DNA of 64,000 nucleotides from Paramoeba atlantica (lineage: Eukaryota > Protista > Discosea): positions 283,041-347,040 of the forward strand of contig CDRNVI010000148.1 of the NCBI GenBank assembly GCA_977017575.1. The letters are read 5' to 3'. Position 1 is the first letter of the stretch, and each line of letters begins with the position of its first letter. Below the pieces are notes generated by a model. It saw only the letters and a list, made by a program, of their open reading frames with translations. It did not search any database and had not been told where the DNA came from. The position numbers and the translations under genes are program-made. Below are positions 16,570 through 43,082 of this stretch, one piece after another.

Positions 16570-18436
16570 ATGCGTTTGGTGTTCCTCTGTTGTTTGTTAT
16601 TTATTATTCTTCTCCTTCCTTGTTCTTTTTGTGATGACGTAAAAGGATGTTTTCGTTATTCTCTTGAAAATGAATGTTCGATTGTGTTGACTGGGAATGT
16701 ATCGATTGAAGAGAACGAACAAGAGGATTTCTTCAACCAGAATGTTTCTTTGGTTGTTTCAAACGTTCGAATGGTCCAAGAAAGTTGTCGAAGACCTTTT
16801 TTGTTTTATTATTGCCAATTGATGTTTGGAGGATTTTTGTGTGAATCTTCTTCTCTTCAAGAACAACATTGTTTAAAACAAGAATCTTGTTTTCAAGTTT
16901 CTTCTCTTTGTTCTGATGATTTTCAACTCAATTGTTCCCTCTCTCCTTCTCCTTCTCCTTCTTCAACAACAACAAATGGATGTGAAAGTGAAGTTGAAAG
17001 ACAAATTGATGAAGTGAAAGAAACACCAATTGAGGTTGAAACATGTTTGAATGGATCAAAAGAGAGAATTGAATGTTGTCCAGATCCGTTTACTTTTGAT
17101 GATAATGATGAATGTGTTGTTGAATGTTATCAATATCTTTTTGGACAATCTTTGGAGAATTGGGTCAGGATTATCAGTTTTTCATTTTCATGGTTCTCTT
17201 TATTTGCTTTCGCAGTGGGATTGATTCCTCTTTCTCTGATGACTGACTTAAGGTAAAACTCTTTTTTCTCAATTTTTTGAATCTCTTAACAAACTCTTTC
17301 TCGTTCTTTGATGAATTATTTTTTCATATGTAAAGGTATCCAAACTATGTCATTTTTATTTGTATTGTGTGTCTTCTTCTTTCGGATTTGTTGTGTCTCG
17401 ATTGGTCAACTTTTGTTGGTTTGGTTTTTTTTTTCATTTCAAAAAACAAACTCTTTCTGATTGATTAATATTGGGAAAAAGGTGGACCAGAATCTTTTGT
17501 TTGTGATGGGAAGAAGAATTATTGGAAATCAGTTGAGTCTTTTCAATCCTCAACACGATCTGCCATTCAGTTTTCGCTCTATGTCTTCTTTGTTCAATTG
17601 GGGTTTACTCATTGGGTTCTTATTTCCTTCAACTTGTTTTGTCATTCAATGAGGTTCACTTCTTTTTCTGTTCTCATCCCTTTTCCTCTCTTACCATTCT
17701 TTTTATTAGACCATTTTCAACATTCTTTGTAAGATTTATTGAACAACCTGTAAACCCAAGAATTATTTATTTGATGGAAGGATTTTGTTTTTGTTTACCA
17801 ACTTCAACATTTTTAGGAACTTTAATTTATTGGTTGAACAATGAAAACGATTCTTTTTCTTTCAATTCAAAACTTTTCCCGTTGCCTGTTTATTCTCTTC
17901 CTTTTCAAGGAAATGATCTTGTTTTGATTGGCCTTTTTGAAGTGCCAGCTATGATCTGTATGTTATTCAGTGCAATTCTCTGTACTGTTGCAATTTTTCT
18001 CTATCTTAAACGAGGAAGAGGAATCCTGTACTTTCAATGGTTTGTTTTTGATTCACCACCGTTTTCACTGAGAAAATTTATTGATCCAAAAACACTGAAT
18101 AGGAGAACAATCCTCCTTTTAATCTATGGGGTGATGGTCTTTTTCTTTTGTGCTATTTATATTGAAGTAATGCGAAAACTATCGAATCAAAACATTGTTC
18201 AGTTTATGGATTGTGTTGGTTCTCACCCTCAAGACAGTCCACCACCATGTGAGAGGCAATATAACAATGGATATTCCTTTATCATTTTCTCTCTAATGAT
18301 CATATTGCTTCCTGGAGGTTCGAGCGTGGTCATCTATTGGACCAATCCATATGTTTTTCTTTGGTGGAAAGAGTTAATCTTTTCACGAAGAGTCTTGAAA
18401 AGTGACCAAGAAGGTGTTCGATATTCTTCCTTGTGA
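16570..18436 (+). CDS. Frizzled/smoothened-like (Fsl, class F-like) GPCR, copy A, 5 exons
   Basis: Signal peptide; Fz-like Cys-rich domain (SCRRPFLFYYCQLMFGGF); CCPDPF linker; TM1 then spliced R|YPN; TM3 THW; ECL3 DCVGSHPQDSPPPC; helix-8-like VFLWWKELIF. All introns are GT-AG and in frame. Confidence 0.85.
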
Positions 18437-18680
18437 TCTCATGAATTCGTGAAAAACCCAATCGGAAAAGGACTGTCAGACCAGAAGGATGCATTGTTGG
18501 TGGTTAATTTTTGAACATAAACTTTTTCAAACTTTTCAAACAACCCAGAAACAAAAAAAGTGTGAACGTTCAGAAAACCTGGGAACAGTTTCTTCCCCAA
18601 TAAAAGTTTTTGGTGGATTGGACACATCAAAACTCGTTCGACTAATTTTTCAATTTTTTCAATTGGTTTAGTTTTCAATG

Positions 18681-19229
18681 TCAGGATCTTTTGGCTGGTT
18701 TGATATTCACTTCCATCTGTTTAAAAATAAAACTTGAAAACCCTTTCCAAAGAATAAAGAAAAGAAATCATAAAAACAAGAGAAAGGAGAGAGAAAAACC
18801 AATTCCAAAGATAAATGAGAATAGTCAAGATTCGGTGGAAAATCATAAATATGAGCGAGATGCTTTGACCAAGAACCAAAAGGAGGATACATCGATTCCT
18901 GATCCTTTGATAATTGACTGTAATTCCAACCTTCAAAAAGAAAAAGGAGAATGAATTGAAAAAAAAAGAAGATTGAACTTTTTTCCAACAACAAAAGAAA
19001 GAGAGAAGAAAAACAGAAAACCATCAGAAGTAATCCCAGTGTCAAAAGAAGAAATTTTCCAATAATTGCCTCTCTTTCCTGGGTGAAAAAATATCCCTCC
19101 TCCCCCTTGTCTGGTAAAACAGTATTTTCCGTTTCTCAGTTTTGGTTCAAGAATGAACTCTCCATCCACTGATGAAGAATGTTTTGAAGACCCTTTTACA
19201 ATGATTGTTTCATTTCCCAAATTACTCAT
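18681..19229 (-). CDS. Small (~125 aa) 3-exon protein of unknown function, copy X1, divergent from Fsl B
   Basis: Exon 1 ...NGKYCFTR..YWKISS.DTGITSD; exon 2 GWNYSQ..MYPPFGSW; terminal micro-exon MEVNIKPAKRS*. Paralog at 27195-27764. Confidence 0.7.
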
Positions 19230-19465
19230 GTGTGATTATTCTTGTCTCTTTCCTTCAAGAGCCGCAGACAAGATGAGAAAATAATGGCAAACCAAAACCA
19301 CAAACAAAAAAACCCTTTTTCTTCTTATTTAGGAAACCATCCTTCTGTGTGCGAACATTTTCATACTTTTTTATTGTGAGAGTGCGAACTCTTTTGCTCA
19401 ACCGTTTTTAATCTTATTTGGACTGCAACTTCTTTCGCGGATTGCATTTTGGGGAGCGTTTGTGG

Positions 19466-21364
19466 ATGGGTTTGGTGTTCCTCTCTTGTTGGTTCTTTAT
19501 TGCTCTTGTTCTTCTTCCTTGTTCTTTTTGTGATGACGTAAAAGGATGTTTTCGTTATTCTCTTGAAAATGAATGTTCGATTGTGTTGACTGGGAATGTA
19601 TCGATTGAAGAGAACGAACAAGAGGATTTCTTCAACCAGAATGTTTCTTTGGTTGTTTCAAACGTTCGAATGGTCCAAGAAAGTTGTAGAAGACCTTTTT
19701 TGTTTTATTATTGCCAATTGATGTTCGGAGGATTTTTGTGTGAATCTTCTTCTCTTCAAGAACAACATTGTTTGGAACAAGAATCTTGTTTTCAAGTTTC
19801 TTCTCTTTGTTCTGATGATTTTCAACTCAATTGTTCCCTCTCTCCCTCTCTCTCTCCTTCTCCTTCTCCTTCTCCTTCTCCAACAAATGGATGTGAAAGT
19901 GAAGTTGAAAGACAAATTGATGAAGTGAAAGAAACACCAATCAAGGTTGAAACATGTTTAAATGGATCAAAAGAGAGAATTGAATGTTGTCCAGATCCGT
20001 TTACTTTTGATGATAATGATGAATGTGTTGTTGAATGTTATCAATATCTTTTTGGACAATCTTTGGAGTATTGGGTTCGAATTATCAGTTTTGTGTTCAC
20101 ATGGTTCTCTTTATTTGCTTTTGTAGTTGCCTTTACTCCTCTTTCTCTGATGACTGAACTAAGGTAAAACTCTATTTTCTCAATTTTTTGAATCTTAACA
20201 AACTCTTTCTCATTCTTGATCAATTTTTTATAAAAGGTATCCAAATAATGTCTTCTTTATTTCTGAAGGTGCCTACCTTCTTTCACATTTATGTCTCAAT
20301 TGGTCAACTTTTGTTGGTTTGGTTTTTTTTTTCATTTCAAAAAACAAACTCTTTCTGATTGATTAATATTGGGAAAAAGGTGGACCAGAATCTTTTGTTT
20401 GTGATGGGAAGAAGAATTATTGGAAATCAGTTGAGTCTTTTCAATCCTCAACACAATCTGCCATTCAGTTTTCGCTTTTTGTTCTATTTCTTCAATTGGG
20501 AACGACTCATTGGCTTCTTGTTTCCTTCAACTTGTTTTGTCAATCGATGAGGTTCAATTTTTACTTTTATTTTTATCTCTCTCTTTCTTTTTTCCTCTTA
20601 TCCTCTTCCTTCTTTAGACAATTTTCAACATTCTTTGTAAGATTTATTGAACAACCTGTAAACCCAAGAATTATTTATTTGATGGAAGGGTTTTGTATTT
20701 GTTTGCCAACTTCAACATTTTTAGGAACTTTAATTTATTTGTTGAACAACGAAAACGATTCTGTTTCTTTCAATTCAAAACTTTTACCATTGCCTGTTTA
20801 TGGTTTTCCTTTTCAAGGAAATGATCTTGTTTTGATTGGCCTTTTCGAAGTGCCAACTTTCGTGTATGCATTCATCAGTGCAATTTTGTGTTTTATTGCA
20901 ATTGTTCTCTATCTTACACGAGGAAGAGTAATCCTGTACTTTCAATGGTTTGTTTTTTATTGATCACCATAAAAATTTCTTTTCTTCTTAGTGCTGAAAA
21001 AACACTGAATAGGAGGTCAATCCTCTTCTTACTCTTTGGAGTGGTGATTTTTGTTTGGGGTATTATTTATATTTTTGTCATGCGAAAACTCTCAAATAAG
21101 AGCATTGTTCATTTCATGGATTGTGTTGGTTCTCACCCTCAAGATAGCCCACCACCATGTGAGAGGCAGTACGATAACGGATATACTTTTAGCATTTTGT
21201 ATTTGGCTATAATATCAATTCCTGGATTTGGGACTGTGATCATTTTTTGGACCAATTCATATGTTTTTCTTTGGTGGAAAGAGTTAATCTTTTCACGAAG
21301 AATCAGGACTTCATCAAAGGAAGATTATCAGGAAATAGGCATCAATCGAGATTCTTCTCGTTAA
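19466..21364 (+). CDS. Fsl GPCR, copy B
   Basis: Same exon structure as copy A, open in all exons; ATG at 19466 (MGLVFLSCWFF). Confidence 0.85.
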
Positions 21365-21545
21365 GTCAGAATCCAAGATTCTTCCTTTTCCTCAATCAAA
21401 CAACTCTTTTGTAGACAACTAATGTTTATTATCTTTCTTTGAAACAAACATTAATCTCTTTGATGAATTTTTGTGTTCCGGAGAGTGAACATCTGGATCA
21501 TATCATTTTATTCTTATTTAGGTAAAAAGGGTTTGATTCCTCCGA

Positions 21546-22137
21546 TTTTTTTAGGTGGGAATATTTTTACCATTGCCTGTTTATGGGTTTCCTTTTCAAG
21601 GAAATGATCTTGTTTTGATCGGTCTCTTTGAAGTGCCAGGTTTATTGTCCGCATTCATCAGTGCAATTCTCTGTTTTATTGCAATTTTTCTCTATCTTAA
21701 ACGAGGAAGGGCAATTTTGTACTTTCAGTGGTTTGTTTTTTCTTAATTTCGTCTCTCCTTACCTAAAAACTCTGAATAGGAGAACAATCCTCTTTTTAAT
21801 CTTTGGAGGGTTCGTCTTCTTCTTAGCTGTTTTTTATGTTGAAGTAATGCGAAAACTATCAAATTGGAACATTGTTCATTTTATGGATTGTGTTGGTTCT
21901 CACCCTCAAGACAGCCCACCACCATGTGAGAGGCAGTATAACAATGGATATTCCTTTATCATTTTGTTTTTGATCTTGGTATTGCTTCCTGAATGTGCGA
22001 CTGTGATCCTTTTTTGGACCAATCCAAATGTTTTTCTTTGGTGGAAAGAGTTAATCTTTTCAAGAAGAGTTTTAACTTTAGCAAAGAAAAATTATCAGGA
22101 AATAGGCATCAATCGAGACACTTCTTCGAATCTATGA
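21546..22137 (+). pseudogene. Fsl GPCR copy C, internally deleted (only TM5-TM7 and tail remain)
   Basis: tttttaggtgggaatatttt (identical to upstream of copy A, 16441-16460) is joined directly to ttaccattgcc of exon 4. The remaining coding part is open. Confidence 0.85.
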
Positions 22138-22329
22138 CCTCACTTGTTTTGCGAAATTTTTGGACTGCCCGCTGCTTCAAGTTTCAAACCAAAAGAACAA
22201 GAACGAAGGGAATGTCCCAGGATTTGCCTATTTTTTCCTCTTGGAAAGAAAAAACGAGTGGGATGATTTGAAGAAAGAAAAGACAAAAAACAAGACAAGA
22301 GAGGAGATAGAAAAGTTTTCAAAAAAGAT

Positions 22330-22372
22330 AGAAAGTGTGGGATTTGAACCCACGAACCCTTGAAACCAGAGA
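22330..22372 (-). tRNA. tRNA-like 3' fragment (T-arm/B-box followed by a T-run); not a complete tRNA
   Basis: The minus strand reads ..TTCGTGGGTTCAAATCCCACACTTTCTATCTTTTTT, a Leu/Ser-type T-arm hairpin. No D-arm or matching 5' acceptor strand was found. Confidence 0.3.
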
Positions 22373-22568
22373 AAAGTGCGTTTTTTTCTTGGAAAAGAAT
22401 CTTATGAGATTTTTGTTCGGGAGAAAATCTTGTTTTTTTTTTTTTTTTTTGAGATTTTTCGAAGAGGGTTCAAAAAAAGAGAGAGCAGAGAGAAAAGAGA
22501 AGGAAAGAGAGATTGATCAATCTGGTGAACGGATTGGAAAAGAGAGAGAGAGAAGAGAAGAGAAGAGA

Positions 22569-24985
22569 ATGGCTCAAGGTTATATTTTTCTTTCTTTTGT
22601 TTTGTTTGTTGGGCCTCTTTTTTGATCGAAATTTCTTTTCCTTTTTTGATTCATTTTCTTTTTTTTTTTTTTGGCAAAACAGACGAAGAAGATTCTCTCC
22701 AAATCCTCTCTTCGGTCTCTCTTTCTTTTCTCTTTTTCTTTTCTTTTTCTTTTTGTTCTCTCTTCTCATTTCTTTTTGTTTTGTTTAGTATCAAGCAAAC
22801 GAAGATCAATCAACTGAAGAAGAAAGCATCGATGGAGAGAGTGAATTGAGGCTTCTTGAAGACATGAAAGAGAGAGAGGAAGATGAGAGAAGAATGGAAG
22901 AAGAAGAAGAGACAAGGAAGAAGGAAGAAGAAGAGAAAAGAAGAAAGGAGGAAGAAGAAATAAGGAGGAAAGAAGAAGAAGAAAAAGAAAGAAAAGAAAA
23001 GGAAGAGAGAATCGAAAGTGAGAGGAGAAGATTGGAGGAAGAGAGAAAAAGAGAGGAAGAAAGAAGAAGAGAGGAGGAAAGAAGAAGAGAAGAAGAGAGA
23101 AGAAGAGAAGAGGAAGAAAGAAGGAGGAGAGAGCAAGAAGAGGAAGAAAAAAGAAGAGAGGAAAGAAAGAGAAGGGAGGTAGAAGAGGAAGAAAGAAAAA
23201 GAAAAGAAGAGGAGGAAAGAAAAAGACAAGAAGAAGAAAGAAAAAAAAGAGAAGAACAAGAAAAAAGAAGAGAAGAAGAAAGAAAAAAAGAAGAAGAAAG
23301 AAGAAAACAAGCACTTTTAGAATTAGAAGAAGAAAGAAGAAGAGAAAGAGAAAGAGAAGACGAAAGAAAAAGAGGAGAAGAAAGAAAAAAAGAGGAAGAA
23401 AGAAGAAAACAAGCACTTTTAGAATTAGAAGAAGAGAAAAGAAAAGAAAAAGAAAGAGAAGAACACCTCCAACAAACCCTCCAATGGATCAAAGAGAAAG
23501 AGAGAGAGAAAGAAGAGAATAAAGAGAGAAGAACACAAGAAGAAGAAGAAGAAGAAGATGGGATAATGACAGAAGAAGAATCAGATTCAATAACCGATTT
23601 TAGAGACGAAAGAGAAGAGAGAAGGAGAGAAAAGTGGAAAGTTTCTTATCATTTGTTCTCTGATTCTTTTATTGAAGAAGATTTGGGTGATGAGAGAGAA
23701 GGAGAGAGAGAAAGAGAGAGGGAAATGGAGAGAGAGAGAGAGGAGAAAGAGAAGAGAAGGAGGATGAGAGGAGAGAAAGAAAATCAATTTGCTTCTTGGG
23801 ATCCTTTTGCGAAGGTTTTTTTGTTCATTTTTTTTCTCTTTTTTTTTCTCTTTTTCTCTTTTTTCCACTTTTTTTCCCTTTATTTTCTTCTTTATTTTCT
23901 TCTTTTTATTTTTTTCGAAAATATTTTCTCTTTCTCTCTTTTTAATCTCTCTTCTAAAACCAATTACCTCAGGAAACAAAAGAACAAATCGAAAAAGAAA
24001 CATATTTAGCGAAATTAGAGAAAATGAGCCAAAGTGCTCGCCAAAAATCGCCCCATTTTGTCGAGGTAAGTCATAAAATGAAAGAAAAAAGATAAGAGAG
24101 AAATTTTAGAGAATAAAACCAACAAATACTTATTTTAATTAACGAATAAGATGTTCATAAGAGGAGAGTGTTTTTGTACTCACAACAATATTATCCAAAT
24201 AATTAATAATAAGAAAAATAATCTTTTATCTTCTTTTGAATATTCTTAAGATTCGCTTCATATTGTCCCGTCTTTTTATTTTTAAAAAATCTGATGAATA
24301 ATAAAGAAGAATAAAAGATTAAGAAATCATATAATAATAGATGGGAGATGTAGTTCGAGCAGAAGATATTGTCTTACAATGTGAGAGTAACAATAACAGA
24401 TAATAATAAATAATAAATAATAATAAATAATAAATAATAATAAATAATAGATGGGAGATGTAGTTCGAGCAGAAGATATCGTATTACAATGGGATGAAAT
24501 GCCTCTTCTTCCTGATACTGAAATTGAGTCTGGAATGGAAGAGATGTCTCATGATGAATTTCTTACTTTTACGTTCTTTCTTTTTTTCTTTTTTCTTTTT
24601 TTTTCTTTTCTTTTTCTTTCTCTGATCTCTTTTTTTTCTTTTTTTTTTCTTTTTGTGTTTTTCTTTCCCTCTTAATTCGACATTTCTTCTGTTCCTTTTT
24701 CCTTTTTCCTTTTTCTTCAATTCAAAAATTGAATGGCTCTTTCGTTTGACAGAGATACTGAAGCAACACCATTATACCAAGAAGAACAAGAAGAATCAGA
24801 AGGAGAAGACGAAGGTGATTCGTTGATTCCTCAAACTCCTGAATCTTCTCAGCCTTCAAATAGAGTTTGTTTTTTTTCTTTTTCTTTTCGTTTTTTTTTG
24901 TTCGTTCTTTCATTTTTTTTGATCTTTTTTTTTCGTTGATTCTTTAGGGAAGGAGAAGGAGAAATTCCTCAAAAAAAAGAAATGA
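22569..24985 (+). CDS. Multi-exon E/R/K-rich low-complexity protein (long charged single-alpha-helix/coiled-coil region)
   Basis: Spliced start MAQ|DEEDSLQILSS|YQANEDQS.. into ORF 22846-24009 (EEERRR/EEERKK repeats; QALLELEEE twice), followed by short 3' exons. Confidence 0.65.
24403..24448. repeat. (TAATAAA)n microsatellite between two copies of a duplicated exon start
   Basis: Direct reading. Confidence 0.9.
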
Positions 24986-25157
24986 AAAAGAAGAAAAAAG
25001 TTGTTGTGATAATCTTTCTCAGTGTACGCTAATGTGAGAACAAACAAAAATAAATAAGAAAAAAAAATAGATTTATTTTTTGGATTATTTTTTGGATTAT
25101 TTTTTGAGATGAAAAAAAGAAAGAAAATTGTTTCAAAAAAAAAAGGAGATATATTTT

Positions 25158-26108
25158 TTAAACAATACCATCCATCCACAACGCATTCAAATTTTGAAAA
25201 GAATCAAAATCAATTTCCCTTTCCATCTCAGCTGCAAGTTCAGAAACATTCAAAAGAAGATGAGAATCTTGAGCACGATCAATAAGATTTCTTGCAAATT
25301 TCTCTTTTCCTTCCAAAACATATCTTTTTTCTCTCAAATCTTCCAAACGAGTTTGACTTTGTTCCAAGGCAATTTGAAGTCTTTCTCCCTCTTCTTCTTG
25401 TTCACGAATCGCAACACCCAAAAAATCGAGATGGGAGGTTACACTCTTCAATTTATCGAGAAGAAGAGCCCTTTTCTCTCTCGCAGCGACATTGATGGGG
25501 ATGATTTTGTGAGAATCATGGCTGACAATCTTACATTCCAAACAAACTAATTCAGAACATTCTGTACAGAAATATTTCAATTCTTGTTGGATATGAAATG
25601 AACAAGGAGGGTGGATTTCTGCCTCGGAGGGATCCACAAGTAAATGATTGAGAAAGATTCTCCCTCTGTGGTGGTTGACCAAGCAATTCGAACACATGAA
25701 AAGTTTGCAATTGTAACAATATCGATGTCCTTCATTTTCACAATCGAAACAAGTTTTGTCGATTGGTCCAAAAAAGTCATTTGGTGGTACATTCTTCTTC
25801 TCATCTCCTTTCTTTTCTGCCGCTGTCGGGTCGTATTTCGGGAGATGTTCTTTTGTTTGGACAATTGTATTATGGCGGCAGAGAGGGCAACAGATCTTCC
25901 ATGTCTTTTTGAAGCTCGAGTGAGTCACTTGAAGACAATCGAAACAAAACGCATGACCACACATTAATAGACGAGGATCTCGAAAATCATCGAAACAAAT
26001 GGCACATTTTTCTTCAGGAAAGTGCATAGGAATGCTCACAAAATCTCCCCCAGTTGTCGTTTCGTCTTGGCTAAAGGGCTCGACCGCCATTGGATTGGTA
26101 TCACTCAA
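25158..26108 (-). CDS. RING / B-box1 / B-box2 / coiled-coil (TRIM-like) E3 ligase, intronless
   Basis: CAICF..LMCGHAFCFDC..CPLCR; CFDCENEGHRYCYNCKLFMCSNC..H..H; CSFH..LKYFCTECSELVCLEC..HDSH; then a coiled coil. Confidence 0.92.
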   Translation of the reverse strand: MSDTNPMAVEPFSQDETTTGGDFVSIPMHFPEEKCAICFDDFRDPRLLMCGHAFCFDCLQVTHSSFKKTWKICCPLCRHNTIVQTKEHLPKYDPTAAEKKGDEKKNVPPNDFFGPIDKTCFDCENEGHRYCYNCKLFMCSNCLVNHHRGRIFLNHLLVDPSEAEIHPPCSFHIQQELKYFCTECSELVCLECKIVSHDSHKIIPINVAAREKRALLLDKLKSVTSHLDFLGVAIREQEEEGERLQIALEQSQTRLEDLREKRYVLEGKEKFARNLIDRAQDSHLLLNVSELAAEMEREIDFDSFQNLNALWMDGIV

Positions 26109-26459
26109 GATGATGTTGAGAAAAAGAAGAAAAAACTGAAAACCCCATCGCCATCACGACAGCAGTTACTACAATCCACCAAAAATGGTTCTGTTTTTAA
26201 ATTATTATTTCAATTTTTTTAAAGTGATTTTCTCGCTATTATAAAAAAATTAGGAAAAATCAAAAAAGGACGTGGAATTCAACGTGTTTGTTCTTTTGTG
26301 GTTGACACGTTTTGGTCTCCTCCCACTTTCGAAAAAAAATGAATGGGAGAATGAACAAAAAGAGAAATGGAATTGAACGTGTTGCTCCAAATGTCTTGCC
26401 ATTTTCAGAAGAGGTTCTTCTCTTTTTTGAATCTGACTTTTTCTGACTTAATTTGGCAA

Positions 26460-27006
26460 GTGAGTTCGAAGAAGTTTGAAGTCAAGATTCTTTTTGAAAA
26501 GATCAGGAAGAACCAAAACTGAGAAAGGGGGGAAAAAGGGAAATGTAGTTTTACAAAGAAAGAAGGACCGAGATATTTTCACCCAGAAAAGAGAGCCAAT
26601 TCTTGAAAAATTTCTTCATTTCACTGGAATTGCTTCTGAAGGTTTTCTTTTCTTTCCCCTCTTTCTTTTCTTGGTTCGGTTTGTCGTTGTACGAGTTGTT
26701 GGAAACTCTTCGTTCAATGAATTTTTAATATCTTCATTTAATTCTCCTTTTTCTTTTTTGAAGGTTGGAATTACAGTCAATTATCAAAGGATCAGGAATC
26801 GATGTGTTCAAAGCATCTTGCTCATCTGAGTATTCCAGTTATCTTTGGAATTGGTTTTCCTCTCCTTCTTTGAAAATTTGGAATTGGGTTTTCTCTTTCA
26901 TTTCTCTTGTTTTTATTTCTTTTCTTTTCTTTTTTCTTTGAAAAGGGTTTAAAGTTTTATTTTTAAACAGCTGGAAGTGAATATCAAACCAGCCAAAAGA
27001 TCCTGA
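26460..27006 (+). pseudogene. Inverted pseudogene copy of small gene X
   Basis: GKCSFTKKEGPRYFHPEKRANS*KISSF aligns to X1 GKYCFTRQGGGGIFFHPGKRGNYWKISSF (TGG to TGA). Introns, the GWNYSQ exon and the EVNIKPAKRS* exon are retained. The 3' flank 27007-27140 matches the reverse complement of ~18540-18680. 5' end approximate. Confidence 0.8.
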
Positions 27007-27194
27007 CATTGAAAACGAAACTGATTATTGAAAAATTAGTTGAACGAATTTTGATGTGTCCAATCCACCAAAAACTTTTATTGGAGAAGAAACTGTTCCC
27101 AGGTTTTCTGAACGTTCCCACTTTTTTTGTTTCTGGGTTGTGTGGGGTTGTCAACTTATCTTTTGATCATTACTTTTACTTTGAATGTGTTTTT

Positions 27195-27764
27195 TCAAGA
27201 TCTTTTGGCTGGTTTGATATTCACTTCGCTCCTCTATGGAAAATAAAATTTATTTTAAGAAATAATAAAAAAAAAGAGAGACAAAAAACAAACTAATTCC
27301 AAAGAAAGATTCCAATAATCAAGATCTGTTGGGGAATCATGAGGATGAGTCAAACTCTTTGACCAGGATCCAAAAGGAGGATACATCGATTCCTCGTCAT
27401 TTGGAAGTTGACTGTAATTCCAACCTTCAAAAAGAAGAAGTTTTATTCTTTGATCTTGTCTTAAGAGAATAATTCTTTGAATTAAATCTAACACCAAATC
27501 AATTTCCAGAACAGAAGAAAAACCTGTAGAAGTAATTCCAGTATTTCTTCCACTAATTTTCCAATAACTCTTCCCACCCCATGTTCGCTCTGTATCAAAA
27601 TATATGGCTCCTTCCTTTCTTTTCTTCTCCCCATCACAATCCTGATCTTGTTTTCTTGTAAAACAATATTTTCCATTTCTAAGTTGTTGTTCAACAACAA
27701 ATTCTCCATCAACAACGCACACCTTTGCAGACCCTTTTATAATAATCGATTCAGACTCACTCAT
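27195..27764 (-). CDS. Small 3-exon protein, copy X2, divergent from Fsl D
   Basis: MSESESIIIKGS..NGKYCFTR..YWKISGRNTGITST|GWNYSQ..MYPPFGSW..LSLEL|RSEVNIKPAKRS*. Confidence 0.7.
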
Positions 27765-28039
27765 TATGTTTTTGTTCTTTCCACAACGACAAAAGTTCTG
27801 GAGTCAACAGAAACTCTTTCTCTTTTTGTTTTTTTCACCCAAAAAGAAAGAGTCAACAAAAAAAACAAAATCTTTTTCTTCTTATTTTAGAAATAAAAGG
27901 TTTTATCGCAGATAACTTTTGGGTGCGAATATTTTCAATCATTTTTATTGTGGGAGTGCGAACTATTCTCAGAATTTTTGTCTTTTTTTCTATTTTTGTT
28001 TCGCTCTCAGTTTTGTGTTGTCTGGGGGGAAGTTTGTGA

Positions 28040-29961
28040 ATGCGTTTGGCGTTCCTCTGTTGTTTGTTCTTTGTTATTCTTCTCCTTCCTTGTTCTTTTT
28101 GTGATGACGTAAAAGGATGTTTTCGTTATTCTCTTGAAAATGAATGCTCGATTGTGTTGACCGGGAATGTATCGATTGAAGAGAATGAACAAGAGGATTT
28201 CTTCAACCAGAATGTTTCCTTGGTTGTTTCAAACGTTCGAATGGTCCAAGAAAGTTGTCGAAGACCTTTTTTGTTTTATTATTGCCAATTAATGTTTGGA
28301 GGATTTTCATGTGAATCTTCTTCTCTTCAAGAACAACATTGTTTGGAACAAGAATCTTGTTTTCAAGTTTCTTCTCTTTGTTCTGATGATTTTCAACTCA
28401 ATTGTTCCCTCTCTTCCTCTCTCTCTCCTTCTCCTTCTCCTTCTCCTTCTCCAACAAATGGATGTGAAAGTGAAGTTGAAAGACAAATTGATGAAGTGAA
28501 AGAAACACCAATTAAGGTTGAAACATGTTTGAATGGATCAAAAGAGAGAATTGAATGTTGTCCAGATCCGTTTACTTTTGATGATAATGATGAATGTGTT
28601 GTTGAATGTTATCAATATCTTTTTGGACAATCTTTGGAATATTGGGTTCGAATTATCAGTTTTGTGTTCACATGGTTCTCTTTATTCACTTTCGGAGTTT
28701 CATTGATTCCTCTTTCTCTGATGACTGATTTAAGGTAAATTTTTACTCTTTTTTCTCGATCTTTTGGCTCATTGTTTCATTTTTGATTGTTGAGAAAACT
28801 TTGATTCTTGATGACTTTTCTCATTTTTCTTTCGAAAGGTATCCAAACAATGTCATTTTCCTATCTGAAGGAAGTCTCATTCTTGCGTGTTTATGTCTCG
28901 ATTGGTCAACTTTTGTTGGTTTGGTTTTTTTCATTTCAAAAAACAAACTCTTTCTGATTGATTAATATTGGGAAAAAGGTGGACCAGAATCTTTTGTTTG
29001 TGATGGGAAGAAGAATTATTGGAAATCAGTTGATTCTTTTCAATCCTCAACACGATCTGCCATTCAGTTTTCGCTTTATGTCTTATTTCTTCAATTGGGA
29101 TTTACTCATTGGCTTCTTCTTACCTTCAACTTATTTTGTCATTCAATGAGGTTCAAATGAAAATTGCCTTCTTTTTTATTCTTTTTTATTCTTACTCTTT
29201 ATTCATTCAGGCCATTTTCAGCATTCTTTGATAGATTTATTGAACAACCTGTAAACCCAAGAATTATTTATTTGATGGAAGGATTTTGTATTTGTTTACC
29301 AACTTCAACATTTTTAGGAACTTTAATTTATTGGTTGAACAACGAAAGCGATTCATTTTCTTTCAATTCAAAACTTTTACCATTGCCTGTTTATTCTCTT
29401 CCTTTTCAAGGGAGTGACCTTGTTTTGATTGGTCTTCTTGAAGTGCCAGGTATAGTGTACGCGTTCATCAGTTCAATTCTCTGTTTTGTTGCAACTGGTC
29501 TCTATCTTAAACGAGGAAGGGCAATTTTGTACTTTCAATGGTTTTTTTTTATTCCACACCATTTTTTCAGTGGAACTTCAGCGCTCTAACAAACACTGAA
29601 TAGGAGAACAATCCTCTTTTTATCCTTTGGAATGACAGTGTTCTTCTTTATGGTTTTTTACGTTGAGATAATGCGAAAACTATCGAATCAAAACATTGTT
29701 CATTTCATGGATTGTGTTGGTTCTCACCCTCAAGACAGTCCACCACCATGTGAGAGGCAGTATAACAATGGATATTCCTTTGTTGTTGAGTTTCTGGTAT
29801 TGGTTTCGGTTCCTGGATCTGGGTGTGTGATCCTTTTTTGGACCAATCCATATGTTTTTCTTTGGTGGAAAGAGTTAATCTTTTCACGAAGAATCTTGAC
29901 TTCATCAAACGAAGATTATCAGGAAATAGGCATCAATCGAGACTCTTCTTCGAATCTATGA
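28040..29961 (+). CDS. Fsl GPCR, copy D
   Basis: Same 5-exon structure, open reading after splicing; the signal peptide resembles copy A. Confidence 0.85.
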
Positions 29962-30285
29962 CCTCACTTTCGAAGTTATTGGAGTGAATCAATACTCTTC
30001 TTGACCTTGATTATGGATGGAAACCCACCTTTAAAAGACAAAAATATTTATTTAATTATTTACTTATGAAAGGGAAGGGAATCATCGTTTCGGAGATTTC
30101 TTTTGTTTTGGCTGAGCAGCAAAACTGATCGAACAATCCCTTCGAGAAAATAAAAAATTGAGGGAAACTTTTCTTATTCTTATTTGGATAAAATCGGTTT
30201 TGTTTCCACTAAGTCTTCTTCGAAGCTTTTTCGTATCAACTTCAGCCGCAAAAGTTGCGTTGTTTGGTGGTTTGGGGGTTTGTGG

Positions 30286-32195
30286 ATGGGTTTGGTGTTC
30301 CTCTCTTGTTGGTTCTTTGTTGCTCTTGTTCTTCTTCCTTGTTCTTTTTGTGATGACGTAAAAGGATGTTTTCGTTATTCTCTTGAAAATGAATGTTCGA
30401 TTGTGTTGACTGGGAATGTATCGATTGAAGAGAATGAACAAGAGGATTTCTTCAACCAGAATGTTTCTTTGGTTATTTCAAACGTTCGAATGGTCCAAGA
30501 AAGTTGTAGAAGACCTTTTTTGTTTTATTATTGTCAATTAATGTTCGGAGGATTTTCGTGTGAATCTTCTTCTCTTCAAGAACAACATTGTTTGGAACAA
30601 GAATCTTGTTTTCAAGTTTCTTCTCTTTGTTCTGATGATTTTCAACTCAATTGTTCTCTCTCTCCCTCTCCCTCTCCAACAACAACAAATGGATGTGAAA
30701 GCGAAGTTGAAAGACAAATTGATGAAGTGAAAGAAACACCAATTGGGGTTGAAACATGTTTGAATGGATCAAAAGAGAGAATTGAATGTTGTCCAGATCC
30801 GTTTACTTTTGATGATAATGATGAATGTGTTGTTGAATGTTATCAATATCTTTTTGGACAATCTTTGGAATATTGGGTTCGAATTATCAGTTTTGTGTTC
30901 ACATGGTTCTCTTTATTCGCTTTAGTATTTGCATCAATTCCTCTTTCTCTGATGACTGATCTAAGGTATTGTTGTTTCATTTTGTTGACTTTGAGAATCT
31001 TTTGTTTTTTGATGACTTTTCTCATTTTTCATATGAAAAGGTATCCAAACAATGTCATTTTTATTTGTAATGGGGGTTTTGTTCTCTCACTTTTGTGTCT
31101 CCATTGGTCAACTTTTGTTGGTTTGGTTTTTTTTTTACTTTTCAAAAAAACTCTTTCTTTTGATTGATATTGGGGAAAAGGTGGACCAGAATCTTTTGTT
31201 TGTGATGGAAAGAAAAATTATTGGAAATCAGTTGATTCCTTTCAACACTCAACACGATCTGCCATTCAGTTTTCACTTTATGTCTTCTTTGTTCAATTAG
31301 CATTTACTCATTGGCTTCTTCTCACCTTCAACTTGTTTTGTCATTCAATGAGGTTCAATTTCTTTTCCTTTTTCTTCCTTTTTCTTCTTACCATTCTTTT
31401 TATTTTCTTTCTTTTTCTGTTCTCATCCCTTTTCCTCTCTTACCATTCTTTGTATTAGACCATTTTCAACATTCTTTGTAAGATTTATTGAACGACCTGT
31501 AAACCCAAGAATTATTTATTTGATGGAAGGAATTTGTTTTTGTTTACCAACTTCAACATTTTTAGGAACTTTAATTTATTGGTTGAACGAAAACGATTCA
31601 TTTTCTTTCAATTCAAAACTTTTACCATTGCCTGTTTATGGTTTTCCTTTTCAAGGAAATGATCTTGTTTTGATCGGTCTTTTTGAAGTTACTGCTCTAT
31701 CCGTGATGTTATTCAGTTCAATCCTCTGTTTTGTTGCAATTTTTCTCTATCTTAAACGAGGAAGGGCAATTTTGTACTTTCAATGGTTTGGTTTTTATTC
31801 AACAATAATTTTTGTTGCTCTAACAAACACTGAATAGGAGATCAATCCTCTTTTTAATCTTTGGAGTGATTGCCTTATTCATTGCCATTCTTTATGCTGT
31901 GATAACTCTGAAACTCTCAAATAAGAACATTGTTCATTTCATGGATTGTGTTGGTTCTCACCCTCAAGACAGCCCACCACCATGTGAGAGGCAGTATAAC
32001 AATGGCTATTCCTTTGTCGTTTTATTTTTGGTGATGTTCTTACTTCCTGGGAGTGCGTGTGTGGTCCTTTTTTGGACCAATCCAAACGTTTTTCTTTGGT
32101 GGAAAGAGCTGATTTTTTCAAGAAGAGTTTTGACTTCATCAAAGAAGGATTATCAGGAAATAGGCATCAATCGAGACTCTTCTTCGAATCTATGA
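30286..32195 (+). CDS. Fsl GPCR, copy E
   Basis: Same 5-exon structure, open after splicing; the signal peptide resembles copy B. Confidence 0.85.
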
Positions 32196-32434
32196 CCTCA
32201 CTTGCTTTGTGAAATTCTACAATTCGTTTTCTCTTTTTTTCCTCATCTTCGATTCTCCTTCTTTGTAATTTATTATGATCGATTATTTGTTAATTATTTA
32301 TTGGTGCTATGGACAATAATATTATTGTTGTCTTATTTTCTCAACAAAAGGGACAATCGACGGTTTGTTGTGAACAATTTGGGTATTTTCGAATTTAATC
32401 AGATGGTGAAGGTGAAGGTGGTGGGCTTGGAGAT
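32024..32434. repeat. ~410-bp direct repeat, left copy (partner 36793-37203): Fsl 3' end plus the 3' tail of the secreted-protein family
   Basis: atttttggtgatgttcttacttcct...gtggtgggcttggagat aligns with few substitutions. Confidence 0.95.
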
Positions 32435-32548: not shown

Positions 32549-35500
32549 TTAATTGTCCTCAACGGTTGTAGAGCCAGACACACTCACACTACATAAAGGG
32601 AGCAAATTCTTCTCTTTCAAAGGCTTATGTCTATCTTGAAACAACCCAACATGAACAAAACCAATAACAAGGAGAAAGATGGAAAAGAACCACAACCACA
32701 GACCCACCATAGCCAAAATCCACGAGAAGAAAGGCTGGTCATTCAAGGCCAAGATGATGGGGATGAATATGATCATCAAGAACACAGCGTTGTACAACGC
32801 AAAGCCAATGTGTTTCGATTCAGAGAAGGCAGAGGGTAAACTTCTTGATTTCCATGCGAGGACAGCACTCACGAAAATGATTAAAAATTTGTACAGGACC
32901 AAAATAATAAAGAAGGGCAAGAAATGATCTGCAACACAGAGTGCGTGGTACTCTCCGTCCACCTTGCGAAGACCCTCTTTTGGGAGATCAATTGCACTCC
33001 AAATTATCAAGATGAAACAATCAATCAGGACCAGGATGACTGTGATGGCAATCAAGCGTCGACGGAGGGAGTTGATGGAAGGGAAGAAGCGTTCGTAGAC
33101 CAAGACTCTCCAGGCTCTGTATTGTTTGGAGATGAGGGAGGCGATGACACATCCTGAAGGGACGACGATCCACCATGGCAGCATCCCACACTTTGCGTCT
33201 GAGGGTTTTCCCAAGAGGAGGAAGACACTGTGATGGAGTGTTAGAAGGGAAAAAGGGAAAAAGGGAAAATGTAAAAAACACAAAAGGAAGGAGGGGCAGA
33301 CCTCGTCATCCCCCACAACACACTCAGATGAAACTGGACCAAAAAATCAAGACCAGCTACCCGAATCCGCCCTCGATCCCGCTTCCATATCAGGACCACC
33401 AGTGAAGCAATAACAGCCAAGCATGAGAGAGAGATCAGGACTGAAAAGGCTATGATCGCTGCGGGGACACTCGGGGAACATCCCTTCTCATCCTCCCAGT
33501 TATCACAATCAAGAATTTGGTCACAAACTGAGGGGAAGGAGTCAAAGGAGGAGAGGAGAGGAGAGGAGAGGAGAGGAGAGGAGAGGAGAGGAGAGGAGAG
33601 GAGAGGAGAGGAGAGGAGAGGAGAGGGAGGAAACAAACCAAGTACATCTTTGATGAAGAGAGGGTCATCTGTGAGATCTGGAGGGACGATAAGTCCAGTG
33701 AAGTCAAGAAACTTCGTCCCATTTGAACAAAACATATACCTAGGTTGGAATAAGAGAAGAAGAGAGCAGACCAGATATGGCAGAGAAAAAGAGAGAGAGA
33801 GGAAAAGGGGAAGAGAAAGGAAGGAAGGAAGGAAGGGAGAGAGGGAGAGAGGAAGAAGAAGAAAAAAGAAAGAAGACCTGTTTTCGATCTTTGTCTGGCA
33901 AAGATCTCCCTCAAAGCCTTCGAAACAGGTACATGTTGAATTCTCACACACTCCTATTATACAAATTCAATACACACAACAACATAACAACACACAACCA
34001 ACAACCAACAACCAACAACCAACAACCAACAACCAACAACCAACAACCAACAACAACACACTACAACACACCACAACACAACACAAAAAAACAAAGCAGA
34101 ACAAGGCAAAGAGAAGGGGAGGAAGAGGTAAGAATGAGTTCTCCCTCCTCTCCTCTCCCCACCTCTCTCCTTTCTTACCTTGTCCAAAACAATCATTGGG
34201 ACAATCCCAGAACCATTTGGTCCACTTTTCCCTATTTTCCTTCACCCAGCTGCAGGCAGCATCATAGTAGGTAAACCCTTCTAAAAATAAAAATTGTTAA
34301 TTTGACAAAGAAGACAAAAGAAGACAAAGAAGACAAGGAAAACGAGAAGACAGGAAGACAAGACAGGCAAGAAACCTGTGTAAGCATATTCAGCAAGCAA
34401 AAAGCGTTGGTCTGCATTTGACATTGTGAATGATTGGTAAAAATGGATGAGTTCAGGATCCAGATCTATTCGGTTGGACATCACCTTTACAACAATACTT
34501 TGCTCGTAATCACAATTGTATCCATTGTTCCACTACACAAGAGGTGTGAGTATTTCTTATTCATAATCAGAGAGAGAGAGAGAAAATATAAAACCAGATC
34601 ATCACATTCAATGCTGTAATAAGGGAGAGAAACACGATCCAAAAGGTAGTCATCAGCATTTGATGTGTTGACGTATTTGTGCCTGAGTGAAGAGACAGAG
34701 AAGAGGAGGAAATCCGAAAAGAAGAGAAGAAAAGATTCCAGGGAGAGAGGAGAGAGGAGAGGAGGAATGAGAGGAGGAATGAGAGGAGAGATTCAAAAAC
34801 AGAATTCAAGAGAGAATCCAAGAAGAGAGAAATCAAAAGAAGAGAGAGATTACTTTAAAAAGATTTCAGTGGGTTCCCAATAATAAAACAGAATAGGTTC
34901 TCTGGCCTCTACTTTCTTAATCCAAGCATCGATAATACCAGTTGCGTTAGAATAAAACACTGCCTCCAAACACAAATTACCATTCTCAATGACTTGGAGA
35001 GAGGCTTTGCTGTCAGCCCACTCTGGGGTGGCGGCTGCAAGATTGTGTCAAATGAGTTCAGATGTGAGGAGAGAGAAGGAGAGGGAAGAAGAAGTGTTGT
35101 GGAGAGGGGAGATATTGAGGTTTTTTAGGATTTTTTAGGGTATGTAAAAATAAGAAAGAATAAAGAAGAAAAGACAAACAAGCAAGTTCTCCCAAATTGC
35201 CCTGTGTAGCGTTTGAGTCGAGCAGGACGACATTATTGCAACTGAGTAAGAAATGAGAAATGAGACAACAACTCCAGCCCCCAACAAAAAATCCAAAAGC
35301 AAAAAAAAAAAAAAAAAAATCCAAAACTCTTTGAAACCACGAAAAGAAGCCAATTTGGGGAGAGCATTAAGCGCATACTGAGGCATAAACCAACCACTCC
35401 TCCCAACCACCCCAAGCGACCCAGCTAAAGTCAACGATCGATTCTCAAACCAAATTGGTGTAGGGACAGTCGCGTAAGCCCAAACCTCAAGATTCACATC

Positions 35501-36057: not shown

Positions 36058-36778
36058 TCATTGAGAGGCGGAGGAGATCGGGCATGAAGGGCCGGTGAAG
36101 AAGAGAGAAGCTGGAGAAGAAAATTTTGGGATTTGAGGTTGGTAGTCCAACCAAAAATCCTTTCTCCAAGTTGTTATCTGAAGTTTTGCCGACTTCAAAA
36201 CGAGTGGATTTGAGACCTTCTCTCCTGAAATCTCAGGAACGAAGAGGGACGAGTTGTGAGCTCGGATGACAGCCCGCCAAGAAATGACATCTGCCTCATG
36301 GTTGATGAAAGAACGAGCACGTCCAGAGGTGATACCTCTTGCCAAGGACCAGATGGGAAGGGCTTCTTTAATTTGAAGTGGGAGAAGAGCATATTGACGC
36401 ACCATCGACAGCACACAGACCCGATAGCAGGGATGCGAGTTTGTAAACCACAGGAAGAAAAACAAGTCGAGCAGCATGAAGAAGCTGGTAATTTTTTGAG
36501 TTGAAGGCTTTCAGCATATTTAACTCTTCATGCCCTGAACCAAGAATTGGCAGAGTATTTTGATATTTTTCTTTTTTTTGGTCCGCGAGCAGAAACCTTA
36601 AGGAACCCGTCTGTGCAGATTGGTAAAATTGAACGATACTCACCACCACCAACTGGGAAATCGGTGATTATCTGATTGAGGATACGTTTCACACTTTCTT
36701 TACTCGAAGGTTTTTCATTCATGGGATCAGGACTCACACAAGTCGGGTCGACACTCTCCTTCGAATTGTGGAGCACAT
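36058..36778 (-). mobile_element. Degenerate, frameshifted relic of a putative transposase-like gene
   Basis: Intronless fragments in different frames: DPMNEKPSSKESVKRILNQI..RSILPICTDG and YQNTLPILGSGHEELNMLKAF. These recall (from memory) the NPnS..cDG..pGxGHxExN motif order of DUF6589-like putative transposon proteins. The relic abuts a rearrangement junction. Confidence 0.35.
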
Positions 36779-36792
36779 TTGGTGATGTTCCA

Positions 36793-37203
36793 ATTTTTGG
36801 TGATGTTCTTACTTCCTAGGAGTGCGTGTGTGGTCCTTTTTTGGACCAATCCAAACGTTTTTCTTTGGTGGAAAGAGCTGATTTTTTCAAGAAGAGTTTT
36901 GACTTCATCAAAGAAGGATTATCAGGAAATAGGCATCAATCGAGACTCTTCTTCGAATCTATGACCTCACTTGCTTTGTGAAATTCTACAATTCGTTTTC
37001 TCTTTTTTTCCTCATCTTCTATTCTCCTTCTTTGTAATTTATTGTGATCGATTATTTGTTAATTATTTATTGGTGCTATGGACAATAATATTATTGTTGT
37101 CTTATTTTCTCAACAAAAGGGACAATCGACGGTTCGTTGTGAACAATTTGCGTATTTTCGAATTTCAGCAGATGGTGAAGGTGAAGGTGGTGGGCTTGGA
37201 GAT
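36793..37203. repeat. ~410-bp direct repeat, right copy; includes Fsl fragment F (TM7/tail, to 36964)
   Basis: Aligns to 32024-32434; a short ttggtgatgttc duplication sits at the left junction (36779-36808). Confidence 0.95.
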
Positions 37204-39566: not shown

Positions 39567-39744
39567 CCCCTCTTTCTCTTCTCTTCCCTTTTCTCCCTTC
39601 CTTTTCTCTTCCCTTGTCTCTTTGCTCAAAAAACCCAAACCCAAAAAAAAGACACAGTTTTACAAAAAAGGAATTTGCCTAAAAAAGGAATATTCTCTCT
39701 TTTCTCTTCTCCACAGACATAAAATCAACAAGAGAAGAAGACGA

Positions 39745-39990
39745 AGAAGAAGAAAATAGAACAGAAAACGAGAAACTATTTGATGCTGTTCTGAAAGGAC
39801 GTATTCTTTCTTCAAAACAAGATTCAACGATTGGATGTAAACTTCCAAGACATGTTTTCTTAAACTCTATTCTTTTCTTTCTCTTTCCTCTTTTTCTTTT
39901 TTTTCTTGAAGATCAACATTGAACATGGATTCAATGTTGCTCTTCAAGATATTGTTTTGATTTTCTTCTTTGATTTTCTTTTTTCTTTTT
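39745..39990 (+). pseudogene. Relic of the ankyrin gene (exon 1 and part of one repeat exon)
   Basis: ENEKLFDAVLKG..ttcttcaaaacaagattcaacgattggatgtaaactt and gaacatggattcaatgttgctcttcaagatattgttttgatt match 45740-45830 and the repeat exons. Confidence 0.7.
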
Positions 39991-40187
39991 TTTATTTTGT
40001 TTTCTTCAAAAATAAAATTTTGTTCAAGGAGGAGCAGTTTCTCTTCTCCTTCTTTGTAATTTATTATGATCGATTATTTGTTCATTATTTATTGGTGCTA
40101 TGGACAATGATATTATTGTTGTCTTATTTTCTCAAATGAAAGGGGGCGATTGACGGTTTGTGGTGAACAATTTGGCTATTTTCGAAT

Positions 40188-42530: not shown

Positions 42531-42669
42531 CCCCTCTTTCTCTTCTCTTCCCTTTTCTCCCTTCCTTTTCTCCCTTTCCTTTTCTCTTCCTTTTCTCTTC
42601 CCTTGTCTCTTCCCTCAAAAAACCCAAACCCAAAAAAGGAATTTACCTAAAAAAGGGTTACTCGAAATG

Positions 42670-42760
42670 AAAACTGAAAAAAAGGATTGAATCTCTCTTG
42701 GTGGGGAAAAATATCAAAACAGCAGCTCAAAAAAATTGAAAACTCAATTTTGAGAGTTTG
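42670..42760 (+). pseudogene. Relic of the 3' end of the ankyrin gene
   Basis: aactgaaaaaaaggattgaatct..aaaatatcaaaacagcagctcaaaaaaattgaaaac matches 47561-47632. Confidence 0.65.
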
Positions 42761-43082
42761 AGATATCATATCCAAATATTTCAGCAAAGGAAAACAAGAA
42801 AAATAAATCCCAAAAACACCAACTCACAACTATATCTGAAAATACATCCTGCCACCTTTTACAAACAAAAAATCCAGAGATCAATTCTGTTAATTATTTA
42901 TTGATGTTATAAGTTACGAGAACAATACTTGTTGCTTCTCAATGAAATGGCTGGTTTGTGAAGAGTAATTTGGGTATTTTCAAATTTAACCAAAGAAGGT
43001 GGAGGTGGTGGGCTTGGAGATGGGGGAGTTTTTCTCAGAGAAATAATGAAAAGGAGCAGTTGGCAGTTTGTGGTGAACGAAT

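Follow-up and report, generated by a model that had tools for sequence, protein, structure and literature searches.

The window analysed here is a stretch of 64,000 nucleotides from the protist Paramoeba atlantica (contig CDRNVI010000148.1, positions 283,041 to 347,040; G+C content of about 36%), in which positions 16,570 to 32,195 carry a tandem array of genes for seven-transmembrane (7TM) receptors that are probably very divergent members of class F, the class of Frizzled and Smoothened among the G protein-coupled receptors (GPCRs). The extracellular part of these receptors is almost the same from copy to copy, whereas the transmembrane (TM) helices differ strongly. The explanation that we favour, with a probability of about 0.55, is that the ectodomain is homogenised by gene conversion and that weakly constrained TM helices drift, possibly with a minority of selected sites in TM6 and TM7. 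According to this model, ectopic conversion would repeatedly copy exon 1 between neighbours and, in the array of the window, would also cover two further segments, intron 2 through exon 3 and the initial two thirds of exon 4, so that all copies would present the same Fz-type ectodomain, the same linker module and some identical loops. The TM helices would be under weak side-chain constraint throughout the family and would drift almost neutrally, filtered mainly for membrane compatibility, and strong purifying selection would hold intracellular loops (ICL) 2 and 3, extracellular loop (ECL) 3, an arginine at the base of TM6, a tryptophan at the end of TM7 and helix 8. The variable TM patches would mostly be leftover DNA, neither homogenised nor constrained, although a minority of TM6 and TM7 codons may additionally be positively selected. 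The copies would be expected to bind the same ligand and to differ in their membrane core.

DNA alignment and splice-site mapping resolve the array into four complete copies (A, B, D and E) and a truncated one (C), all derived from a five-exon gene on the plus strand. The open reading frames (ORFs) of the complete copies are intact and encode 534-545 amino acids, with GT..AG borders at 16/16 introns. In the proteins, a signal peptide is followed by two Cys-rich modules with a Ser/Pro linker between them, by seven TM helices and by an amphipathic helix 8. Exon 1 encodes all of this up to and including TM1, exon 2 corresponds to TM2, exon 3 to ECL1 and TM3, exon 4 to ICL2, TM4, ECL2, TM5 and ICL3, and exon 5 to TM6, ECL3 with its two Cys, TM7 and helix 8.

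An earlier note, made from the DNA alone, had described a near-constant ectodomain next to variable TM helices, and the counts of variable amino-acid columns bear this out: 80/184 in the TM helices versus 8/171 in the ectodomain (Fisher p=6e-19) and 21/120 in the loops (p=2e-6). The peptide strings that it quoted are all found where it had placed them. Variability is concentrated in the inner half of TM1, in TM2, in a block of eight codons in TM5 and in most of TM6 and TM7, where 17/23 and 16/25 positions vary, respectively; TM3 and TM4 are nearly constant among the copies of the array. In TM5, TM6 and TM7 the variable block occupies the outer or middle part of the helix, and in TM1 and TM2 the inner half of the membrane. 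The exchanges are mostly among F, I, V, L, S, A and T, and the TM segments keep their hydrophobicity and a constant length among copies. Even the truncated copy C has TM5, TM6 and TM7 blocks of its own and a still conserved ECL3 and helix 8. The same contrast is found at a greater distance. Across the subclades of the family, amino-acid identity is 0.64-0.67 in the Cys modules, 0.55 in ICL2, 0.65 in ICL3 and 0.58 in helix 8 versus 0.21-0.34 in the TM helices, which are the least conserved part of the protein.

Synonymous divergence (dS) indicates how the ectodomain has been kept alike. Among A, B, D and E it amounts to 0.10 in the ectodomain (with a nonsynonymous divergence, dN, of 0.013 and a nucleotide p-distance of 0.031), 0.065 in TM4 and 0.06 in ICL2, versus 0.33-0.39 in all parts of exon 5. 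A, B and D have an identical intron 2; the nucleotide divergence of introns 1, 3 and 4 is 0.24-0.32. Moreover, incompatible partitions of the copies alternate along the gene: the signal peptide groups them as AD|BE, intron 1 as AB|DE, and exon 2, intron 3 and the TM5 block as AE|BD. The longest runs shared between copies are significant in permutation tests (p<=0.002). The mosaic sharing of blocks, which the earlier note had described and ascribed to gene conversion, is thereby confirmed, and conversion as the source of the constant ectodomain is supported. Low dS in the converted segment and mosaic tracts are both present, as in concerted evolution by domain-restricted gene conversion. An independent replicate of the pattern is provided by a second array on a separate contig (L002), in which copy e differs from copies a-d by a dS of 0.8-1.9 in the TM regions versus 0.11-0.17 in the ectodomain; the change occurs where TM1 begins. 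In that array, the ratio of dN to dS (omega) of the TM regions is 0.3-0.7.

Positions 18197-38676 of the window have a colinear counterpart, at 98.3%, in a second assembly from the same organism (L001, ERZ24900291 ctg3779l). Between the two assemblies, 2-3 single-base differences fall in TM6 and TM7 codons of B and D (21183, 21185 and 29819), no further ones were found in the divergent TM blocks, and DNA contigs from three further runs cover several TM blocks without differences. The patches that had been called hypervariable are fixed differences between paralogs that do not vary between haplotypes or samples; they result neither from haplotype collapse nor from hypermutation that is still going on. 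Outside these blocks, the differences between the assemblies are of a peculiar kind. Within B, D and E, the base at 33/46 single-base differences is that of a different paralog (0.083 expected by chance, p=7e-26), and 31/46 fall in exon 1, with none in 3.3 kb of adjacent unique DNA. They reflect either conversion that continues at a very high frequency or cross-talk between paralogs in one of the assemblies. This clustering in paralogous genes, next to identical unique DNA, is also what an artefact would leave, if mixed haplotypes or a collapsed or chimeric assembly of paralogs had created the mosaic. Such an origin is nevertheless highly improbable: the two assemblies agree on gene order and differ by the few bases mentioned above inside the TM blocks, the contigs of the three additional runs match several of these blocks, exon 1 itself differs by 3-5% between the copies, and the same pattern is found on the independent contig L002. 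The check for collapsed or mixed haplotypes, by which the earlier note would have abandoned its proposal, thus speaks against an artefact.

How far selection acts on the membrane helices can be assessed best in exon 5, which offers a clean test of omega since dS is uniform in its TM and non-TM parts. Imported old divergence as the cause of the high dN of TM6 and TM7 was rejected for this exon on the same ground. The site models M0, M1a and M2a were run with our own code, which was not checked against PAML, on the 97 codons of exon 5 from all five copies. They were restricted to this exon because five-fold differences in dS between gene segments would mimic omega>1, and they assume one synonymous rate and single-nucleotide changes for five sequences from an array with proven recombination and a nearly star-like tree. 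With the NG86 estimator, omega is 0.79 in TM6, 0.71 in TM7 and 0.11 in ECL3, and 0.71-0.82 for TM5-7; at the same dS, the protein changes about 7-8 times faster in TM6 and TM7 than in the adjacent ECL3 and helix 8. If all membrane-compatible residues were neutral and all others lethal, an omega of 0.70-0.75 would be expected, so that the region-wide values of TM5-7 do not require positive selection. In addition, the nucleotide divergence of TM6 and TM7 (0.29-0.32) is about that of the introns, and M1a assigns 52% of the exon 5 codons to omega 0.02 and 48% to omega 1.

Several results weigh against the favoured explanation. With corrected estimators, omega of TM5-7 is about 1 (YN00 mean 1.05; maximum likelihood 0.59-1.55, mean 0.93), and YN00 gives 1.2 for TM6 and TM7 together versus 0.14 for the non-TM part of exon 5. 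As about 40% of the TM5-7 positions are invariant, the remainder must exceed the average. M2a is preferred over M1a under 15/15 topologies (likelihood-ratio statistic 5.8-8.4, chi-square p 0.015-0.055), with an extra class of 13-16% of the codons at omega 3.1-4.4, and in a parametric bootstrap under M1a 0/85 replicates reach the value of 8.39 obtained with the best topology (2/85 reach 5.8). Acidic, His and Asn residues occur inside TM2, TM6 and TM7 of some copies only. Short blocks of very high divergence, such as the eight codons of TM5, stand between long homogenised flanks, which is easier to understand if selection rejects conversion there. Finally, the conversion-like differences of L001 could be cross-talk during assembly or polishing, given that the unique 3.3 kb next door are free of differences. 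A site-wise analysis of the kind that the earlier note had called for yields a modest signal under M2a, and omega at the level of regions is about 1 (0.71-1.2) and not clearly above it; positive selection on some TM6 and TM7 codons is weakly supported.

These observations are shared by an explanation that goes further, in which the TM core would be a Smoothened-like ligand pocket under diversifying selection and the array a repertoire for membrane-soluble or small ligands, with a constant ectodomain and blocks shuffled by conversion. The kinship with class F, the mosaic sharing of blocks and the polar substitutions within helices fit this picture, as do the omega of about 1 or above in TM5-7 versus 0.11-0.14 in the adjacent loops at equal dS, the preference for M2a, the seven sites with a posterior >=0.8 for omega>1 (exon 5 residues 11, 16 and 21 in TM6, residues 65, 73 and 74 in TM7, and a single site in ECL3) and the outer or middle position of the TM5, TM6 and TM7 blocks. 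However, the TM1 and TM2 blocks are on the inner side of the membrane, nearly every position of TM6 and TM7 varies, and no 100-degree periodicity was detected in any helix, either for variability (p 0.24-0.87) or for the probability of omega>1 (p 0.46-0.75). Furthermore, most exchanges are within the set of seven residues listed above, omega of the TM regions stays below 1 in the L002 array, the TM blocks are almost unchanged between assemblies and samples, and the selection test has the constraints described above. We regard a diversifying pocket as possible, if rather doubtful, and a chemoreceptor function of the array would be pure conjecture. Slightly more doubtful still is a combination in which conversion would hold one Fz-type ectodomain while selection diversifies and reshuffles the TM5-TM7 blocks, so that a single extracellular ligand would be coupled to various signalling outputs, partners or intramembrane ligands (sterol or lipid). 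If this were true, the array would be a 7TM analogue of the paired receptors and a pocket-diversifying relative of Smoothened.

Divergence of the helices at an omega of about 1 might also mean that the copies are on their way to being lost, in a birth-and-death process in which redundant copies become pseudogenes and the TM divergence reflects loss of function. The truncation of C and a 411-bp fragment of E at 36793-37203 are in line with this, and so are two +1 frameshifts that break the frame of exon 1 in the other assembly: one in B, at window position 19840 (L001 1644) in the CT-rich Ser/Pro linker, and one in D (whose exon 1 in that assembly is P0001), at 28638 (L001 10521) in a G run. 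These frameshifts, lying in a CT-rich run and a G run, are either haplotype-specific pseudogenes or assembly errors. Against decay stand the four intact ORFs with their 16 canonical introns, the strong constraint on about half of the exon 5 codons (omega about 0.02-0.03), an omega of 0.11-0.14 in ECL3 and helix 8 despite a dS of about 0.35, the constant length and hydrophobicity of the TM segments, and the retention of the TM6-base Arg and the TM7-end Trp in all copies. Decay is therefore unlikely, and the genes appear to be functional, as indicated by the intact ORFs and splice sites, the constrained half of exon 5 and a spliced RNA-type contig of a close paralog. In this contig, from run X5, the end of exon 1 is joined to exon 2 exactly at the modelled junction, so that at least one member of the family is transcribed and spliced as modelled. 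The contig matches the end of D exon 1 (28501-28737) at 96% and continues into an exon 2 reading YPNNVVFLSGG, which matches none of A-E; a further close paralog is thus present elsewhere or in that strain. In the genome of the protist, the family comprises at least 20 genes, which have this exon structure in common and are arranged in several tandem arrays (L002 to L008).

The assignment of the family to class F, which the earlier note had made from the sequence, is supported by transitive homology; the direct tests are blank. Pfam Fz or Frizzled gave no match in 53 scans of exon pieces of window-type genes (8, 25 and 20 pieces), with Fz at 0/20 in the ectodomain pieces at E<=10, and Frizzled (PF01534, IPR000539) did not match directly in 25 TM pieces or 10 full-length relatives. 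A sequence-profile search of the PDB with profiles built from the family itself for the ectodomain (A2) and for TM4-7 (A3) found no match. AlphaFold2 models were weak, with a pLDDT of 56 in the case of exon 1 and of 62 in that of a TM4-7 piece from A. The fold search was blank for exon 1, and Foldseek against the PDB and a VIA-wide search returned only generic helical matches with Z<8, which allow no conclusion on the fold. A feature search of the ESM Atlas gave leads only, namely Frizzled-4 clusters at 0.82 and Dicty_CAR/7tm_2/Frizzled clusters at 0.88-0.91, and a word search with the E ORF at 30184-31167 recovered only 17 ORF-style calls, all from the same assembly.

The exhaustive HMMER search with A2, on the other hand, retrieved 56 relatives, including full-length cDNA-type proteins (MMETSP, JGI metatranscriptomes, Logan). 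Relatives carrying Fz were matched at E-values of 1e-5 to 1e-25, with Fz inside the aligned region; among the full-length relatives, Pfam Fz scores 33.2 bits in P0066 (cut-off 32.1), 31.0 in P0045 and 24.4 in P0029, which also has 22 bits on 7tm_2. A profile of 15 of these relatives (A4) matches Frizzled-4 in the PDB (8wm9_A, E=4.5e-17), FZD6 (7e-11) and FZD3, FZD5 and Smoothened (about 1e-9 to 4e-8). The matches to Frizzled-4/6/3/5 and Smoothened (E=4.5e-17 to 1e-7) span the receptors from the cysteine-rich domain (CRD) to TM7, with the CRD of FZD4 aligned. In hhalign comparisons, A4 is joined to A2 with a probability of 100% (E=3e-42) and to A3 with 99.4% (E=1e-21). Since relatives carry Fz, A4 matches Frizzled and Smoothened, and A2 and A3 are tied to A4, the window genes are best read as very divergent class F receptors, by this transitive route only. 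A family that is invisible to exon-wise Pfam scans and is found by transitive profile searches will be under-counted in GPCR censuses of such protists.

Single residues agree with this assignment in part. Two residues, the Arg of QWR at the TM6 base and the Trp of WTNP at the TM7 end, do not vary among A-E and the paralogs; in an approximate alignment chained through A4, the former aligns with the Arg of FZD6 MIRIGVF and the latter with the Trp of FZD6 VFW that precedes KTxxxW. We take the two to be the class F switch positions 6.32 and 7.55 (R/K6.32-W7.55). The array copies also have the ECL1 Cys and the two ECL3 Cys. Neither A-E nor the L002-L006 paralogs have the Cys at the top of TM3 or that of ECL2, both of which are present in relatives P0032-P0045; this is a paired loss specific to the subfamily. 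The motif KTxxxW was not found after TM7, where the sequence is (Y/F)WTNPxVFLWWKELIF and only the final Trp matches the W of FZD6 KTCTEW. In the searched sections of a survey of amoebozoan receptors (PMC10445921), KTxxxW directly after TM7 is quoted as a defining motif, and only two Fsl proteins of D. discoideum keep it, so that its absence leaves room for an Fsl-type membership of the window genes; most amoebozoan members lack it, according to those sections.

Positions of the copies and of their parts are collected in the table below. Intron 4 of A is in frame, so that 17711-18433 reads TM4-TM7 contiguously; intron 3 of B is in frame as well, and so is intron 1 of E, which results in the 327-residue ORF at 30184-31167. 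No exons 1-3 are present upstream of C. C was also considered as an alternative 3' cassette for B, which was dismissed since the frame coming from exon 3 meets a stop and TM4 would be missing. The E fragment overlaps an open frame at 36680-36961, lies 4.6 kb downstream of E, includes 240 nucleotides of flank and comes without upstream exons; it is a recent duplication of a fragment.

Receptor array and related features in the window (positions of the 64,000-nucleotide stretch)
Feature	Position	Strand	Description
Copy A	16570..18436	+	intact, 5 exons, 534 amino acids; canonical splice sites, one stop only
Exons of A	16570-17252, 17336-17418, 17482-17653, 17710-18039, 18103-18436	+	
Homogenised block in A (also in B, D, E)	16570..17190	+	signal peptide, Cys module 1 (putative divergent Fz CRD), Ser/Pro linker, Cys module 2, outer half of TM1
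Exon 5 part of A (likewise B-E)	18103..18400	+	variable TM6 and TM7; conserved ECL3 (with two Cys), WTNP and helix 8
Copy B	19466..21364	+	intact, 5 exons, 544 amino acids
Exons of B	19466-20163, 20237-20316, 20380-20551, 20618-20947, 21013-21364	+	
Copy C	about 21555..22137	+	truncated: 3' half of exon 4 (from ECL2), intron 4, exon 5
Copy D	28040..29961	+	intact, 5 exons, 545 amino acids
Exons of D	28040-28734, 28839-28918, 28979-29150, 29211-29540, 29604-29961	+	
Copy E	30286..32195	+	intact, 5 exons, 539 amino acids
Exons of E	30286-30965, 31041-31120, 31181-31352, 31459-31785, 31838-32195	+	
3'-end fragment of E	36793..37203	+	411 bp, 98.3% to 32024-32434: second half of TM7, tail, 3' flank

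The receptor genes are interspersed with others. A small minus-strand gene lies beside A (18537-19229) and before D (26510-27764, with an ORF at 27255-27764 of 169 residues and no Pfam match); as the two copies are about 76% identical in DNA, the duplicated unit consists of a receptor and the minus-strand gene. Between C and D, positions 22846-24500 contain an E/R/K-rich low-complexity ORF (387 residues) and then DNA in which the assemblies differ by 54 substitutions and 56 gap columns, the most variable part of the 20 kb common to both. In the middle of the array, an intronless ORF with a RING and two B-boxes (TRIM-like N-terminus, 316 residues) is found on the minus strand at 25158-26108. 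A class C GPCR exon (7tm_3, E=3e-27) follows directly downstream of E on the minus strand (32549-33951), and farther up this strand there is an EGF-like Cys-rich exon. Another tandem family occupies the minus strand at 38490-45412, with ORFs of 384, 356 and 344 residues, no Pfam match and copies about 95% identical in DNA; L001 19055-20611 matches both 40186-41637 and 42953-44519, and differences between the assemblies cluster there too. Outside the window, a Wntless-like TM domain (PF06664) was called on the minus strand of contig L004 (14286-15164), which also carries two members of the receptor family; the domain is of interest given the class F kinship.

Among the closest known systems are the amoebozoan Fsl receptors, treated as GPCR family 5 in the survey sections searched, which describe them from Dictyostelium, Physarum and Acanthamoeba with lineage-specific expansions (PMC10445921). 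A class F assignment of the window genes agrees with these expansions. As in the Fsl proteins portrayed there, an N-terminal Cys-rich domain precedes a 7TM core, expansions occur in tandem, the CRD is often hard to recognise and, in most cases, KTxxxW is lacking. The window genes differ from them in that no exon reaches a Pfam Fz or Frizzled score, that membership follows from transitive profile searches and that the Cys pair of TM3 top and ECL2 is lost. Neither ectodomain homogenisation nor TM-specific divergence was found in the keyword-searched sections of the survey (PMC10445921).

The likeness to the animal Frizzled and Smoothened receptors (8wm9, 8jhb and 6xbl) lies in the Fz-type CRD, the Cys-containing linker before TM1, the long TM6/ECL3 region with two Cys and, for FZD6, the aligned TM6-base Arg and TM7-end Trp. 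Unlike in animal Frizzled, the family of the window keeps of KTxxxW the final Trp only, and its TM helices are the part that evolves fastest. In animals, in which class F receptors have almost exclusively been studied, the membrane cores are strongly conserved, and the TM helices of FZD paralogs are highly similar to each other. We know of no Wnt or Hedgehog context for the family of the window. In its arrays, several of which occur in one genome, the membrane core would be free-running and the Fz domain fixed. If the signal of positive selection holds, these arrays would be a natural experiment on what the 7TM cavity of class F binds or couples to; if it fails, the helix bundle of class F would need little side-chain information beyond the TM6-base Arg, the TM7-end Trp, the loops and helix 8.

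Like the genes of the window, the odorant, TAS2R and V1R receptor repertoires come in tandem arrays, show gene conversion and vary at residues within TM helices. In these, the variable positions face the pocket around conserved motifs and there is no large constant ectodomain; in the array of the window, by contrast, helical periodicity is absent and whole blocks vary.

A parallel to the conversion pattern comes from vertebrate paired receptors and TLR1/TLR6. In the parts of the reports on CD300A/C (PMC12447643), CEACAM (PMC2832619) and TLR1/6 (PMC2077338) that were consulted, gene conversion in part of tandem paralogs keeps the ligand-binding ectodomain alike and leaves the membrane or signalling part different. 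The claim that the array shows the opposite of the usual pattern was therefore overstated. In those systems, as far as the same parts describe them, the receptors are single-pass and the differing parts carry known activating or inhibitory motifs, whereas in the array of the window the differing part is the 7TM bundle of a protist receptor. What is new relative to the literature searched is that a class F family shows such a conversion pattern, that it does so in several arrays of one genome, and that its TM core evolves at an approximately neutral rate beside loops with an omega of about 0.1.

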